Positions 52,133-57,693 of a stretch of DNA of 64,000 bases are shown piece by piece (within the stretch, counting starts at the first letter, position 1; every line of letters begins with the position of its first letter). The notes below the pieces were generated by a model. The model did not search any database. It worked only from the letters and a program-made list of their open reading frames with translations, and had not been told where the DNA came from. The DNA comes from Bugula neritina. Lineage: Eukaryota > Animalia > Bryozoa. The position numbers and the translations under genes were made by a program. The stretch spans positions 4,124,741-4,188,740 of the forward strand of contig OZ037768.1 in assembly GCA_964035545.1 (NCBI GenBank). The letters run 5' to 3'.

Positions 52133-54487
52133 ATGGCAAATATCAGAAAGAAACTGGTTATTGTTGGAGATGGCGCTTGTGGAAAAACTTGCTTGCTCAT
52201 TGTCTTTTCTAAAGATCAATTTCCTGAAGTATATGTGCCCACTGTGTTTGAGAACTATGTAGCTGACATTGAGGTTGATGGCAAGCAGGTATGTCCACGT
52301 TTTTTTGAGTGATCCACTTGTACTTAGGGTATTGATAAAGTTTAGTATAGTGTTTTATGGAACAGTCACACAATGTACTTCCTTCTACCCCCTGAGGATT
52401 ATTGTAACCAACAGCATACTGTAAAGTAATCTGATCTCAAGCTACTTCATAAGTAAAGTATAACATGCATAAGCCTTGCATCTACACACAGACACACATG
52501 AAAAACAAAGTAACAAATCTATAAAAATGCACCAATATAATGACAATACTAGAGACAGTGGGTTCAGTCTCACACCAGCTCTCAATTTATGCCAATCTCT
52601 TTTTTTCGCGCATGCCGACTATATTCAAATATCGAAATATTAAATGCCTGTTCCACCCAGCACATGAAAATTTCTTGTGCACCTTTCCACCTCATACCAG
52701 ATCATCAAAGCTTAATATTCTACAACTCGACTATGTCTGGACTCGATGAGTAACGGCTACTGAGTGGTCACCAAAGCCACCCACCATGGTAAGAGTCTGT
52801 GTAGGTTGTTGCGGCTGCGTGTGGCATTGCGTCACTCCAGGAAGCATGCTCATCGGACTGGCTCTCCATTTCTGTTGTCTCTAGAACTCTCACTTGCCCT
52901 TTTTGTTTCATTTTGTTAAATGCATGATGTTATTGGCCTGGGAAGTTTATGCATGGGTTATATTCATATTTAGTAGAAGTGTTTTAAAAAATTGTCGCTA
53001 TATTAAAACTTTGTCGCTCTGCTGCAAGAAGTTCACAGTGAATATGAATATTGTCTCGGCTCCATTAGACTGGTCTGCTGTTTCCAGCTAATTTTTTGGT
53101 TGCTCGAAAATTTGATGGGATACAAGGAATCGGGAAAACTGCCACCCAGAGCTGCGGTGTCGAGTTGTCATTGTTGCATATTTTAAACCACAGGTTTTCT
53201 TAACTATGCCAGCTACTAGCGTTGAGTCTGGCAAATTTTTTTGACAAGTTACTGAATTAATAAGCAATAGAATCATTCTACATTTTGATTCCAACTTTTA
53301 AAACTAGGATTATTGGTTATTTCTCAACAGATCAGATTTGCTTCAAACCTAACTAATTTTAGCACCCATCAGTGAATGTAATATTTTTCAAAGATTACGT
53401 TTTCTGCAGCATTTGCATGAGTGATTATATTGAAATTGCAAGTGTGCTACACTCAATCACGGTATGCATTGCATGTCTGATATTTTGAGATTTCTATGAG
53501 TGTTTCAGCATGTTTCTTCATGTGATATGTTGTATATTGCAGGTGGAGTTGGCATTGTGGGATACAGCAGGGCAGGAAGACTACGACAGACTGCGCCCTC
53601 TCTCCTATCCCGATACACATGTTATACTTATGTGCTTTTCCATAGACTCGCCGGACTCGTTAGAAAATATTCCTGAAAAATGGACACCGGAAGTAAGGCA
53701 CTTTTGTCCGAATGTGCCCATCATCCTGGTGGGCAACAAAAAAGATCTCAGGAACGACCCCAACATCATCAGTGACCTAAAGAAAATGAAGCAGGAACCA
53801 GTCAAAACAGAGCAAGGCCGCGCCATGGCTGATAGTATTAGTATGTTGATTCCTGTGTTCTTGTGCTGTAAACTCACTGGCCACATTCTCAATACTCTTG
53901 GGAATATCATTATTGCTCTATATAGCCCTACAGTGTGTTCTAATATTGATATTTTGTATAATTTGCCATGAGATAGTGGAGCTACTCTCTCATAGAGGGT
54001 CAGTGTTGCCTCATCAGCCTGTGTTACTAGTCTGTCAGATACTAACAGGGCATCACTTATGGTCTAATGAAGTCTTCAATTAGCAAATTGTTTTCATGCT
54101 AAGCTGCTGTGTGGCAACACTCGATGTATTGAACCAGTCTGTCCTAGTATAATGGTATAATGAGCTCAGTATAATGCCCTGCTATTAATAACGTGTAGCA
54201 CGTTGTTTAAACATTCACCTCTTCAGTGATTCATACTTGTCTGTAGCTGTAGTTATGTTGGTGAGAACTAGTAACAAGTAACCACAGCTCTAGTGCTGAG
54301 CATTGTCACCACCACTCCATACCTGTCAGTGTTTTTATGTTCCCAACATTTTCTTCTTTTAGATGCTTTTGGATACCTGGAATGCTCGGCTAGAAACAAA
54401 GAAGGTGTGAGAGAGGTGTTTGAGACGGCTACTAGAGCAGCTTTGCAAGTCAAGGGACACAAGAAAAAGAAGTGCACTCTTTTGTAA
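52133..54487 (+). CDS. RHOA: RhoA/Rho1 small GTPase, isoform A (shared exon 52133-52288 + 53543-53840 + 54363-54487; 192 aa, ends KKKKCTLL)
   Basis: GDGACGKT P-loop, YVPTVFENY switch [17 protein letters not shown]. Exons sum to 579 nt with canonical splice sites. Confidence 0.95.
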
Positions 54488-57400
54488 ATCTCTAGATGGC
54501 CGTCTTCCCACCATAACACTACCACCACACCATCGGTCCTTACCTCACACCACCTTCAGGCGGAGGCTGTCTCAGCAGCCTCTGCCACTATCTTTGCGTC
54601 TTTGACGAGCAAACTGTGTATTTCCTGGCGTCCACTCCGCTGTGAACAGCAATCACCAAATAAGTTGACAGTGTTATTTAGGGGACATTTTAGTATACAT
54701 GTACATATTAATAGCATTAGTTAACATGTTATTTTATACAATTGCTGCAAGCACTTCTTTGAGAAATCACCATCCATTGTTACATAATGGCATCAAAAAC
54801 TACTGCACAAACCTTTCTAGTACTAAGTTTGTCTTTTACTGGTATAAAACAACTGTTGCCATTGGCTTGTTCAATCAATTGACTGGTTTTGCTCTAGAGT
54901 ATAGGTTTTTACACAAGACCTCCTAGTTGGTAGAGTTGTAGGTAGTTGCTGCTGTGCTTATTGTAACTTTGGATGGGGTTTTATTCAGTTGGCTAATTTG
55001 TCACTATTTTCTTCTTTTTTTTTCTTCAAACAATGTTGTCACAAAATTATTTATAACATCTTTTAACACAATATATTATACAAATATAATTGATAATAAA
55101 TACATCTTCCTTTATGGAGATGCCATATTGTGGTGAAATTGCATAGGCCCAATCATATTCTGCAGTTCATAATATTATTCTTGTAAGCAAGAATTCCAAA
55201 TTTAAACCGTTACAAACAGCCCTATCATACTTGTATCACAGCCCCTCCAGAACTGGGTTTTGGGGCTTGTTTTGCTATTTTTTATTTGTATATTATTGAA
55301 TAGCAGTCTAAGCTAGCAGAGTAAAAATACTGGTGTTCTCGATTCTTCTTGCTAACTTGCAGCAATCAAGCAAGTTAATGCATGCAAATGCCCAACTGTA
55401 ACTGCTAAATTATATGTATGCATGAGAAGGCATTGACTTGCATGACATTTTTACCCAACCGATTAAGTCATTCACTTGTTTGAGTCTTGGCCAGAGTAGA
55501 GGTCTGACTTGATATGGATACTTAACTTGATAGAGCTCATCTTAATTCATTCTGCTACTCAATAGGCAATACGAAAATTTGTTCTCAACTAAAGCAGCTA
55601 ATGCAACAGAGTTTAGTTGTAACCCCTGTGACAGATGCATCTTGGGTGTTGCATAATAATAGTTTTGCAGGGGTGTAAGAATTAATTTGTATTGTAATCA
55701 AGCTGTAACTATGAAAATATTTTTTGTATTAAAATATGTCTTGGCTTCTATTTTGCCTTTTGTCAGCTAGACAGGTATTTTCTGGCATTAATAGGGTTCA
55801 AGTTACATGTTACAATTCTTCAATAACTGTATGTTCGTGAAATGTGGAAATTGCTGATTTCATGGAAGCTTCCCCCAACACGGAAGTTGGTATTTATTAT
55901 TTAATAGTAGTTTATTGTTAATAAAGCTAAAAATTTTGCCAGCTATATTACTGTGAAACTGTGTGATTATTGATTAGTTGCATACTTCTGAACATTCATT
56001 CTTTGAACTTTCATTGTATCACGCAGTCATATTTAGAAAAGTTAACAAGCCTTATACAGTTAGGAATTTCAGCTGACTCAGTGAATAAGTCAAATCCAGC
56101 AAAATGTACTCCTCAGGGTGCAACTGCATCTATCTGAGGTTATCTCATCGGCTGTCATACTAGATGCTGATAACATTTCATGTTTTACAGATTCACTACA
56201 GAAGGGCTAGCCAAAATATTGTCATGGTTTATATGATTTAACCAGCCTTCCTATAATATAATCCCAGCTGTAGTCTATATTAATGTCATATTTATATAAG
56301 GTTGAACTGGCATTGTGGGATACGGCCGGGCAGGAAGACTACGACAGACTGCGACCTCTCTCCTATCCAGACACTGATGTTATACTTATGTGCTTTTCGA
56401 TAGACTCTCCTGATTCGTTGGAGAATATTCCTGACAAGTGGACACCAGAGGTTAGCTTGTGGTTGTCATAGTTTCCCATAACTTATTCATAATTATTATA
56501 ATTATCTTGTACAGTGTATGGCGTATGCTGTATGTTGTTTAAAAACCTTCCTCACATGTAGTCTTTTGCATGAAGCTCTTTGCTTGCAATTATTTTAAGT
56601 TAATTTATATAGGTCAAGCACTTTTGCCCAAAAGTGCCACTAATTTTGGTTGGAAACAAGAAAGACCTCCGTAATGATGAGAATACGAAGAGAGAGCTAA
56701 TGAAGATGAAGCAGGAACCCGTGAAGATGGAACAAGGCCGGGAAATGTCTAACCGGATTGGTAAGTATTTATACTGATACATTATGTATAGAAGAGTGTA
56801 ATATTGTATAACCATAATACACCCTTATCTGTAGTACTGCAGAAATGAGTATATTATAGTTTTACTATATACAATATTTTATTTTATATGATGAGAGAAC
56901 ATGTCCGTAATGAATGGCACACGTTTTGTTTAATTTGTTATAATTAGTCCAAAGTAGAAAAACCCATATAATTGAAAAGATGGACATTATTGATATAATA
57001 TGTAATGTATGTTAAAGATTCATATGATTATTATATATATAAGGTTTGATACTTCATACAATTATATATTGAAATCTTATATGAAATCGTTTTAGATTTT
57101 ATATGCAATTTGTAATAGTATGTAATCATCGATAGTTGATTATTGCTATTTTTTTCTATTCTCACCTATCTCGGCTTTGTCCTGTTCGGTAGCAGATATA
57201 GTTGATTATTTCTATAGCAGTGTGAAATGTATCCCATCATCATATTTATAGTAGCATACAATACAATTGAGTAAAGAGAATACAACTCCATTTAATCTAA
57301 CTATTACTGATTATTTCCCATCTAAGCTGGTGCATCTTCAACACCTCAATATCATATAAGATATTTGTGTGTACCATTTTATATAGTTGTTAAAAAATAA

Positions 57401-57693
57401 TGATTAGAGCATATTTTATTAAATCGTCCTTTTAATTTGGGAAATCATTGGAGGTTGCCTTCTTTTTTGCTTTTGTTGTCAAAGTCTATGCTAGGTTGTA
57501 TTAAATTTAATGCCTTCTTTACATTCTTGTGTTGCTGATGTAATAAACATGTGATGACATAATTTCAGGTGCGAAAGACTATTTGGAGTGCTCAGCGAAG
57601 ACCAAAGAAGGCGTGAGAGATGTGTTTGAGGCCGCAACCAGGGCAGCTCTCGAGAAAAGTAAAAAGAAGGGGAAAAGTTGCATTTTATTGTAA
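52133..57693 (+). CDS. RHOA: RhoA/Rho1 small GTPase, isoform B (shared exon 52133-52288 + 56301-56450 + 56613-56760 + 57569-57693; 192 aa, ends [10 protein letters not shown])
   Basis: Second intact copy of residues 53-192 with canonical splice sites. Exons sum to 579 nt when joined to the only P-loop exon in the region. No second exon for residues 1-52 was found between 54487 and 56301. Confidence 0.85.

Follow-up and report, generated by a model that had tools for sequence, protein, structure and literature searches.

Can a single Rho gene equip an animal with two Rho proteins that have a common N-terminus and a different remainder? This question is raised by a locus in the bryozoan Bugula neritina, situated on contig OZ037768.1 of the assembly GCA_964035545.1, of which a stretch of 64,000 nucleotides (nt; positions 4,124,741 to 4,188,740 of the forward strand, hereafter the window) was analysed. 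Cytokinesis, contractility and morphogenesis depend on Rho proteins as central switches, and in vertebrates these proteins were diversified by whole-gene duplication into RhoA, RhoB and RhoC. From the comparisons presented here, the Bugula locus is best read as a single gene orthologous to RhoA/Rho1, which possesses one shared 5′ part and two alternative 3′ exon blocks, termed A and B; we assign this reading a probability of roughly 0.85. Positions are counted from the first nucleotide of the window, and features lie on the plus strand unless noted otherwise.

The shared first coding exon, E1 (52133-52288, 156 nt), encodes residues 1-52 with the P-loop (G1) and switch I/G2, and ends at a donor read as CAG/GTATGT. 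Residues 53-192 are encoded twice downstream of it. Block A consists of exon A2 (53543-53840; residues 53-151 and the first base of codon 152), which comprises switch II, the G4 motif NKKD and the Rho insert helix without an internal intron, and of the last coding exon A3 (54363-54487), in which SAR as a variant of G5 is followed by a polybasic tail, the CAAX box CTLL and the stop codon TAA. Block B is divided into B2 (56301-56450; residues 53-102), B3 (56613-56760; residues 103-151 and the first base of codon 152, with G4 and an insert helix of canonical Rho type) and the last coding exon B4 (57569-57693), in which G5 reads SAK and the polybasic tail leads to the CAAX box CILL and the stop codon TAA; a serine adjoins the tail cysteine only in this body. 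The first-pass annotation of the window had described exactly this E1 and the two blocks at 53543-54487 and 56301-57693 with intact frame, splice sites, stop codon and CAAX box, and its description is borne out to the base. AG acceptors and GT donors are present at the exon junctions throughout both blocks, and both blocks open in phase 0, as required after E1. A phase-1 intron at codon 152 is common to A and B, while the phase-0 intron after residue 102, between B2 and B3, is absent from block A. The intron from E1 to A2 (52289-53542, 1254 nt) has GT and AG boundaries, and the intron from E1 to B2 (52289-56300, 4012 nt) contains the entire A block. One shared donor is thus followed by two acceptors of the same phase, each leading to its own stop codon, as is characteristic of alternative last exons. 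A classical cluster of mutually exclusive exons was considered and rejected, since nothing Rho-like follows B4 and each block ends in a stop codon, leaving no shared downstream exon. Upstream of E1 a non-coding exon is likely, because an AG directly precedes the ATG.

With the E1 peptide as query, a tblastn search of the entire 64 kb window in six frames (E<=10) returned no second E1-like exon. The span between the blocks (54488-56300), in which no further first exon had been seen before, and the 52 kb upstream of E1 are free of E1-like sequence by the same search. Only one other E1-like exon exists in the genome, as part of a complete paralogue with four exons on a different contig, C5. Two complete tandem genes were rejected as an explanation, since the window and each bryozoan contig spanning the locus contain only one E1. 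In the Pfam profile of the Ras family (PF00071), E1 accounts for positions 1-47, body A for 49-161 and body B for 48-160. Either body is therefore completed as a GTPase only by E1, the sole source of positions 1-47.

Comparison of the two bodies revealed differences at 31 of 140 residues and at 107 of 417 compared coding bases. The affected residues are 78 and 97, three around 104-112, six in the insert helix, five in 141-150, residues 152, 154, 155, 162, 163, 169 and 173, and eight in the tail. This recount agrees with the approximate number of the first-pass annotation and with the regions it had named (insert helix, surroundings of G5, tail), and its count of 20 differences in the first 150 nt, 18 of them synonymous, was reproduced exactly. 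Its claim of purifying selection on both copies also holds: over the whole body the proportion of synonymous differences (pS) is 0.70 and that of nonsynonymous differences (pN) 0.14 (Nei-Gojobori), which gives a dN/dS of about 0.08 with dS being saturated. Only in part does this apply to the claim of identical switches, as switch I, being encoded in the shared E1, is indeed the same, but switch II differs at its end residue 78, which is histidine in A and aspartate in B. The G3 motif DTAGQE and the G4 motif NKKD are found in both bodies.

Both bodies belong to the Rho subfamily by the presence of the Rho insert helix and by having RhoA, RhoB and RhoC, rather than Rac or Cdc42, as their nearest solved relatives. 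In searches against the PDB, exon A2 matched RhoA best (E 3e-54, vs 2e-37 for Rac1), and exon B3 gave RhoA with E 8e-23 vs approximately 4e-8 for RhoG/Rac; the alignments are gapless through residues 103-151, and RhoA is the closest solved relative of both bodies. The CAAX boxes end in leucine and each follow a lysine-rich stretch, and from the L-ending box both products are predicted to be geranylgeranylated. The product of E1 and body A is 100% identical to the annotated Rho1 of B. neritina (P0007). As a side observation, pS is lower in the first 150 nt of the bodies (53543-53692 vs 56301-56450; 0.55) than in the remainder (0.71-0.85), and the B2 DNA of the window is nearer to A2 of a distant bryozoan (83%) than to B2 of that same species (79%). 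Both findings hint at gene conversion or at a strong codon or RNA constraint near the acceptors.

An independent assembly of B. neritina from NCBI, GCA_010799875.2, holds the same locus with both blocks at approximately 92% identity, and therefore represents another haplotype or a cryptic species. Between the two assemblies, E1 shows 3 and block A 8 nucleotide changes, none of them altering an amino acid, and block B shows 14, of which 13 are synonymous and one leads to a conservative Leu/Ile replacement. Introns diverge by 5-6% (5.8% in the intron from E1 to A2) and the spacer between the blocks by 8.5%, and every splice site is retained. The possibility that block B is a falsely duplicated segment created during assembly is refuted by this locus and by several metagenome and Logan contigs of other species; moreover, the copies differ at the 107 coding bases mentioned above and in intron structure. 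Across 44154-62147 of the window, aligned with the corresponding contig L024, non-coding divergence amounts to 5-8%, and 9-15% is reached at synonymous sites of the Rho gene. Such values exceed ordinary haplotype variation and fit different members of the B. neritina species complex.

Four further bryozoan lineages were covered by genomic contigs from Logan and from ENA/JGI metagenomes, including a scan with exon B3. The orthologous locus keeps its order in these relatives: three lineages (L032/L037/L038, L033/L034 and L039) show E1-A2-A3-B2-B3-B4 with one E1, and the fourth was recovered in pieces that read E1-A2-A3 (L035), A3-B2-B3 (L042/L043) and B2-B3-B4 (L040). The E1 protein is 100% conserved in the five bryozoan lineages, Bugula included, and the B2 protein is 100% identical in all bryozoan contigs. 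In the two deeply diverged contigs, pS relative to the window is 0.7-0.9 and thus saturated, with a pN of 0.05-0.09 for both A and B, and each AG and GT is located at the identical position. Residues specific to B are common to all bryozoan contigs, namely Lys109, Glu146, Lys154 followed by an acidic residue at 155, Ala173 and Glu180, and the bryozoan B copies form a clade with a support of 100/97. Judged by these comparisons, block B is an old and constrained coding block that lacks a first exon of its own in every sampled lineage.

The paralogue on contig C5 is a complete second Rho1 gene with four exons (G000:C5:12588936-12591778; L023 4937-7779; P0095 in the NCBI annotation). Its intron positions are those of block B, and the tree joins it to the bryozoan A copies with a support of 97/92. 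A duplication of the segment from E1 to A3, at a time when A still had its first intron, is its probable origin.

Several observations weigh against a gene with two alternative blocks. In the window genome the B2 acceptor, AAG, is weak and its pyrimidine tract poor; other bryozoans have CAG or TAG at this site. The annotation of GCA_010799875.2 ends at A3 and models only E1 with block A, so that block B is unannotated, and the protein database holds neither an E1+B protein nor a B-type fragment of any bryozoan. This latter blank says little, because the A isoform is also present there only via the NCBI annotation. All metagenome contigs bearing block B are genomic, and many metagenome-derived contigs of other invertebrates show one E1 with a single body, so the layout is not universal. 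The lack of an annotation and of a database product might be taken to mean that block B is an unexpressed, 5′-truncated relic of a tandem duplication. This is scarcely credible and, for practical purposes, refuted, given that frame, splice sites and CAAX box are intact in five bryozoan lineages despite saturated synonymous sites, that 13 synonymous changes stand against a single conservative replacement between the two Bugula assemblies, and that the B-specific residues are conserved within a well-supported B clade. A pseudogene or decaying partial duplicate was rejected on the same grounds, as there is no frame disruption, no lost splice site and no dN/dS near 1.

Alternatively, block B might be transcribed from its own promoter or be joined to an unrecognised, non-homologous 5′ exon, yielding a product without P-loop and switch I. 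The E1 to B2 junction in Bugula is itself a prediction, and the stretch of approximately 200 nt 5′ of B2, which is conserved between the two Bugula assemblies, could equally well represent a promoter or a region with branch point and acceptor. We nevertheless consider this explanation quite unlikely. The B2 acceptor is in phase 0, an exact match to the E1 donor. An in-frame ATG 18 nt upstream of B2, the sole one nearby, does not keep its open frame: in GCA_010799875.2 it is followed by an in-frame TAA, so that B2 is not a self-starting open reading frame (ORF). Residues 53-81, which precede the first internal methionine, are 100% conserved across bryozoans, and translation must therefore start further upstream. 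Ras-type GTPases are known to be unable to bind nucleotide when G1 and G2 are missing from the G domain, and the corresponding Pfam positions are supplied only by E1. Finally, in the annelid Dimorphilus, where the same layout occurs, the two bodies are only 226 nt apart.

Splicing from E1 to either 3′ exon block thus remains the most likely way in which one promoter would produce two Rho switches, and for Bugula we infer both junctions and both poly(A) sites. In the proposed mechanism, the E1 donor would be joined to the A2 acceptor with removal of 1254 nt, and the transcript would end past A3, with a poly(A) signal near 55095 and cleavage at approximately 55100. Alternatively, the same donor would be joined to the B2 acceptor, removing 4012 nt including the A block, and B3, B4, the second stop codon and a poly(A) site near 58000 would follow. 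Each messenger RNA (mRNA) would encode a full Rho protein of 192 residues with the shared nucleotide-binding N-terminus. The choice would be set by competition between the proximal A2 acceptor together with cleavage at the A site and read-through to the distal block B. Its weak AAG acceptor suggests for the window genome that block B depends on assistance or yields the minor form.

The 3′ regions are consistent with such a scheme. The probable 3′ untranslated region (3′UTR) of the A isoform (54488-55120) contains AATAAA at 55095, from which the cleavage site is predicted. Relative to GCA_010799875.2, the sequence from the A3 stop codon to about 55200 contains no indels and diverges by 1-5% per 100 nt, after which divergence rises abruptly to 15-37%. 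The spacer that follows within the E1 to B2 intron (55121-56300) is conserved again in its last approximately 200 nt before B2. Downstream of B4 lies the probable 3′UTR of the B isoform (57694-58020) with ATTAAA at 57974 and AATAAA at 57986 and 58001, and the sequence from the stop codon through these hexamers diverges by 2-5% without indels. This pattern fits a separate 3′UTR after each stop codon. Part of the conservation after B4 may belong to a convergent minus-strand gene that ends at 58161. This gene, annotated in GCA_010799875.2, comprises an ORF of 252 residues (58161-58919, minus strand) without a Pfam family, and the 3′UTR predicted for the B isoform must adjoin or overlap its 3′ end. 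Long-range complementary arms of the docking/selector type, linking the E1-proximal intron with the region 5′ of B2, were searched for and none was found. Likewise, there are no conserved non-coding islands relative to the distant bryozoans, save approximately 20 nt at the B2 and B3 acceptors.

On its 5′ side, the Rho gene has PRP8 as a head-to-head neighbour, which is retained in the bryozoan contig L032. The approximately 970 nt just 5′ of E1 (51123-52090) do not align with the NCBI assembly of B. neritina, though the flanks on both sides do, with 85-92% identity. An insertion could account for this, as could a rapid turnover of the 5′UTR-intron or promoter region between PRP8 and Rho.

How far does this layout extend beyond bryozoans? 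A profile of P0007, in which the B exons were aligned as separate rows, retrieved approximately 25 NCBI models of about 320 residues (P0121-P0150), and their loci were then fetched. The models read E1, a body from 53 to 180 and a body from 53 to 192, with the join placed right after AALQ of the first body. One E1 with two bodies, each having an acceptor, a CAAX box and a stop codon, was found in Dimorphilus, the oyster Crassostrea angulata, the sea hare Aplysia californica and the bdelloid rotifer Didymodactylos. The downstream body of Aplysia has an intron after residue 102, as in block B of Bugula. The 320-residue models of Asterias, Acropora, Adelges and Erpetoichthys turned out to merge two complete genes in tandem that possess an E1 each, and the layout was therefore rejected for these animals. 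As far as the fetched loci indicate, the layout is spiralian but patchy. An additional marine invertebrate contig, from a marine metagenome in ENA (L068), contains two tandem single-exon Rho bodies at 1309-1740 and 3851-4280; no E1 lies within the fetched range, which excludes 2.9 kb further upstream.

The models of about 320 residues bear on another explanation, in which both bodies are included in one transcript by joining a donor inside A3 to B2, resulting in a protein with a duplicated body. Precisely this join is carried by the approximately 25 database models, but those of the four non-spiralian species are demonstrable artefacts of annotation. The corresponding site in A3 of Bugula, CAA/GTCAAG, is a poor donor, and the tail, CAAX box and stop codon of body A are conserved in all bryozoans, which would be pointless if they were spliced out. 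Furthermore, we know of no precedent among small GTPases for a protein with two copies of the strands and helices of residues 53-180 behind one P-loop. A double-bodied Rho is hence very unlikely, and the models are annotation merges, of alternative bodies in spiralians and of tandem genes in the four non-spiralians.

The age of the duplication was addressed with trees from the concatenated exon translations of the bodies, in which codon 152 was given either as the real split codon or as X. The labels upstream and downstream required 2 changes on the trees, compared to 6.9-9.3 after shuffling. A tree that unites all downstream copies in one clade performs as well as the best tree; for one clade of all upstream copies, rejection is borderline (p 0.06). 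A duplication of the bryozoans' own is not rejected (approximately unbiased test, p 0.17-0.47); the bodies are too short and vary too little for the event to be dated. The first-pass annotation had proposed a partial internal duplication that was turned into alternative splicing of last-exon blocks. The splicing part of this proposal gains comparative support, but a local and recent event does not stand, as the duplication is older than the divergence of the sampled bryozoan lineages and may be as old as Spiralia. The arrangement is accordingly older and wider than had been supposed, and one ancient origin of the layout is favoured by these trees. In its fullest form, such a scenario states that the layout arose once before the radiation of Spiralia and that bryozoans, molluscs, annelids and rotifers have kept it for more than 500 million years, with the downstream body as the conserved canonical Rho and the upstream body as a fast-evolving, lineage-tuned alternative; for this we see even odds.

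The oyster locus offers an instructive comparison. CgRho-1 and CgRho-2 have been described as tandemly repeated genes that originated from an oyster-specific duplication (Li et al. 2015, PMC4669188). CgRho-2 was reported as a protein of 182 residues with an “incomplete G2 loop” that is barely expressed and rises in low salinity, and the pair has a Ks of 1.53 and a Ka/Ks of 0.15 (PMC4669188), similar to A vs B of Bugula. Re-analysis of the locus in C. angulata gave one E1 and two bodies, as in Bugula. For CgRho-1, a gene length of 9297, a complementary DNA of 1434, a first intron of 1279 and 3 exons are listed (Table 1 in PMC4669188), from which we computed a second intron of 6584 bp. This length matches the distance from E1 to the downstream body in L026 (6568 bp) and not that to the upstream body (3290 bp), so the abundant oyster mRNA is E1 spliced across the upstream body. 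The database protein “Rho1 isoform 1” of C. ariakensis (P0185) corresponds to E1 with the upstream body. In oyster, the form with the downstream body is thus the abundant one and the other form is low and salinity-responsive (PMC4669188), whereas in Bugula the distal form B is possibly the minor one; unlike oyster, Bugula has introns in both bodies. No paper recognising the shared first exon was found in the searchable literature, where the oyster case is treated as tandem duplicates.

Among known systems, vertebrate CDC42 comes close: a ubiquitous prenylated and a brain isoform are generated by alternative last exons (PMC10883850, PMC6411841). In both cases the upstream part of a Rho-family gene is joined to either of two terminal exons with their own stop codon and 3′UTR, and in CDC42 the isoforms differ in membrane behaviour. 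CDC42 exchanges approximately the last ten residues, whereas Bugula would exchange 140 of 192, from switch II to the CAAX box, in blocks of two or three exons, and both Bugula tails, unlike the CDC42 pair, retain a box of the CAAL type. Tandem homologous coding segments of a small GTPase are also used alternatively in KRAS4A/4B, by an alternative fourth exon, and in RAB6A/RAB6A′, by a duplicated exon. These genes swap one exon (about 40 residues, or 3 differing residues), and RAB6A has a shared downstream exon, which is lacking in Bugula after the alternative blocks. Vertebrate RhoA, RhoB and RhoC resemble the Bugula A/B pair in being closely related, in having a common core switch and in showing most of their differences in the C-terminal half, but each is encoded by a gene of its own that has a separate first exon and promoter.

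With 31 differing residues located in the insert helix, on the surface formed by 141-155, in the G5 region and in the polybasic tail, the A and B proteins should differ in effector, regulator and membrane behaviour. In Schistosoma, SmRho1.1 and SmRho1.2 show seven differences, mostly at approximately 147-153, which alter the choice between the partners HDAC8 and Dia (PMC8670706). This region also differs between A and B of Bugula, and by analogy functional divergence of the two proteins is plausible. As a described precedent for the layout itself the schistosome pair was rejected, since residue 33 differs as well and the two are treated as paralogues (PMC8670706).

In Bugula, 73% of a Rho protein would be exchanged by RNA processing while N-terminus and promoter are shared, far beyond the C-terminal swaps of CDC42 or KRAS. 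If both isoforms are made, the gene would represent a natural experiment on those Rho surfaces that set effector and regulator specificity (insert helix, 141-155 face, G5 and tail), and at the same time a clean model of the choice between a proximal and a distal terminal exon block. The comparison also points to a systematic error of annotation: the public Bugula annotation lacks block B, the oyster pair is filed as tandem genes of which one is “incomplete”, and many models of 320 residues are merges. If the single ancient origin is true, the layout would constitute a deeply conserved route to two Rho switches from one promoter, which has been hidden as tandem duplicates, fused models and single-isoform genes.

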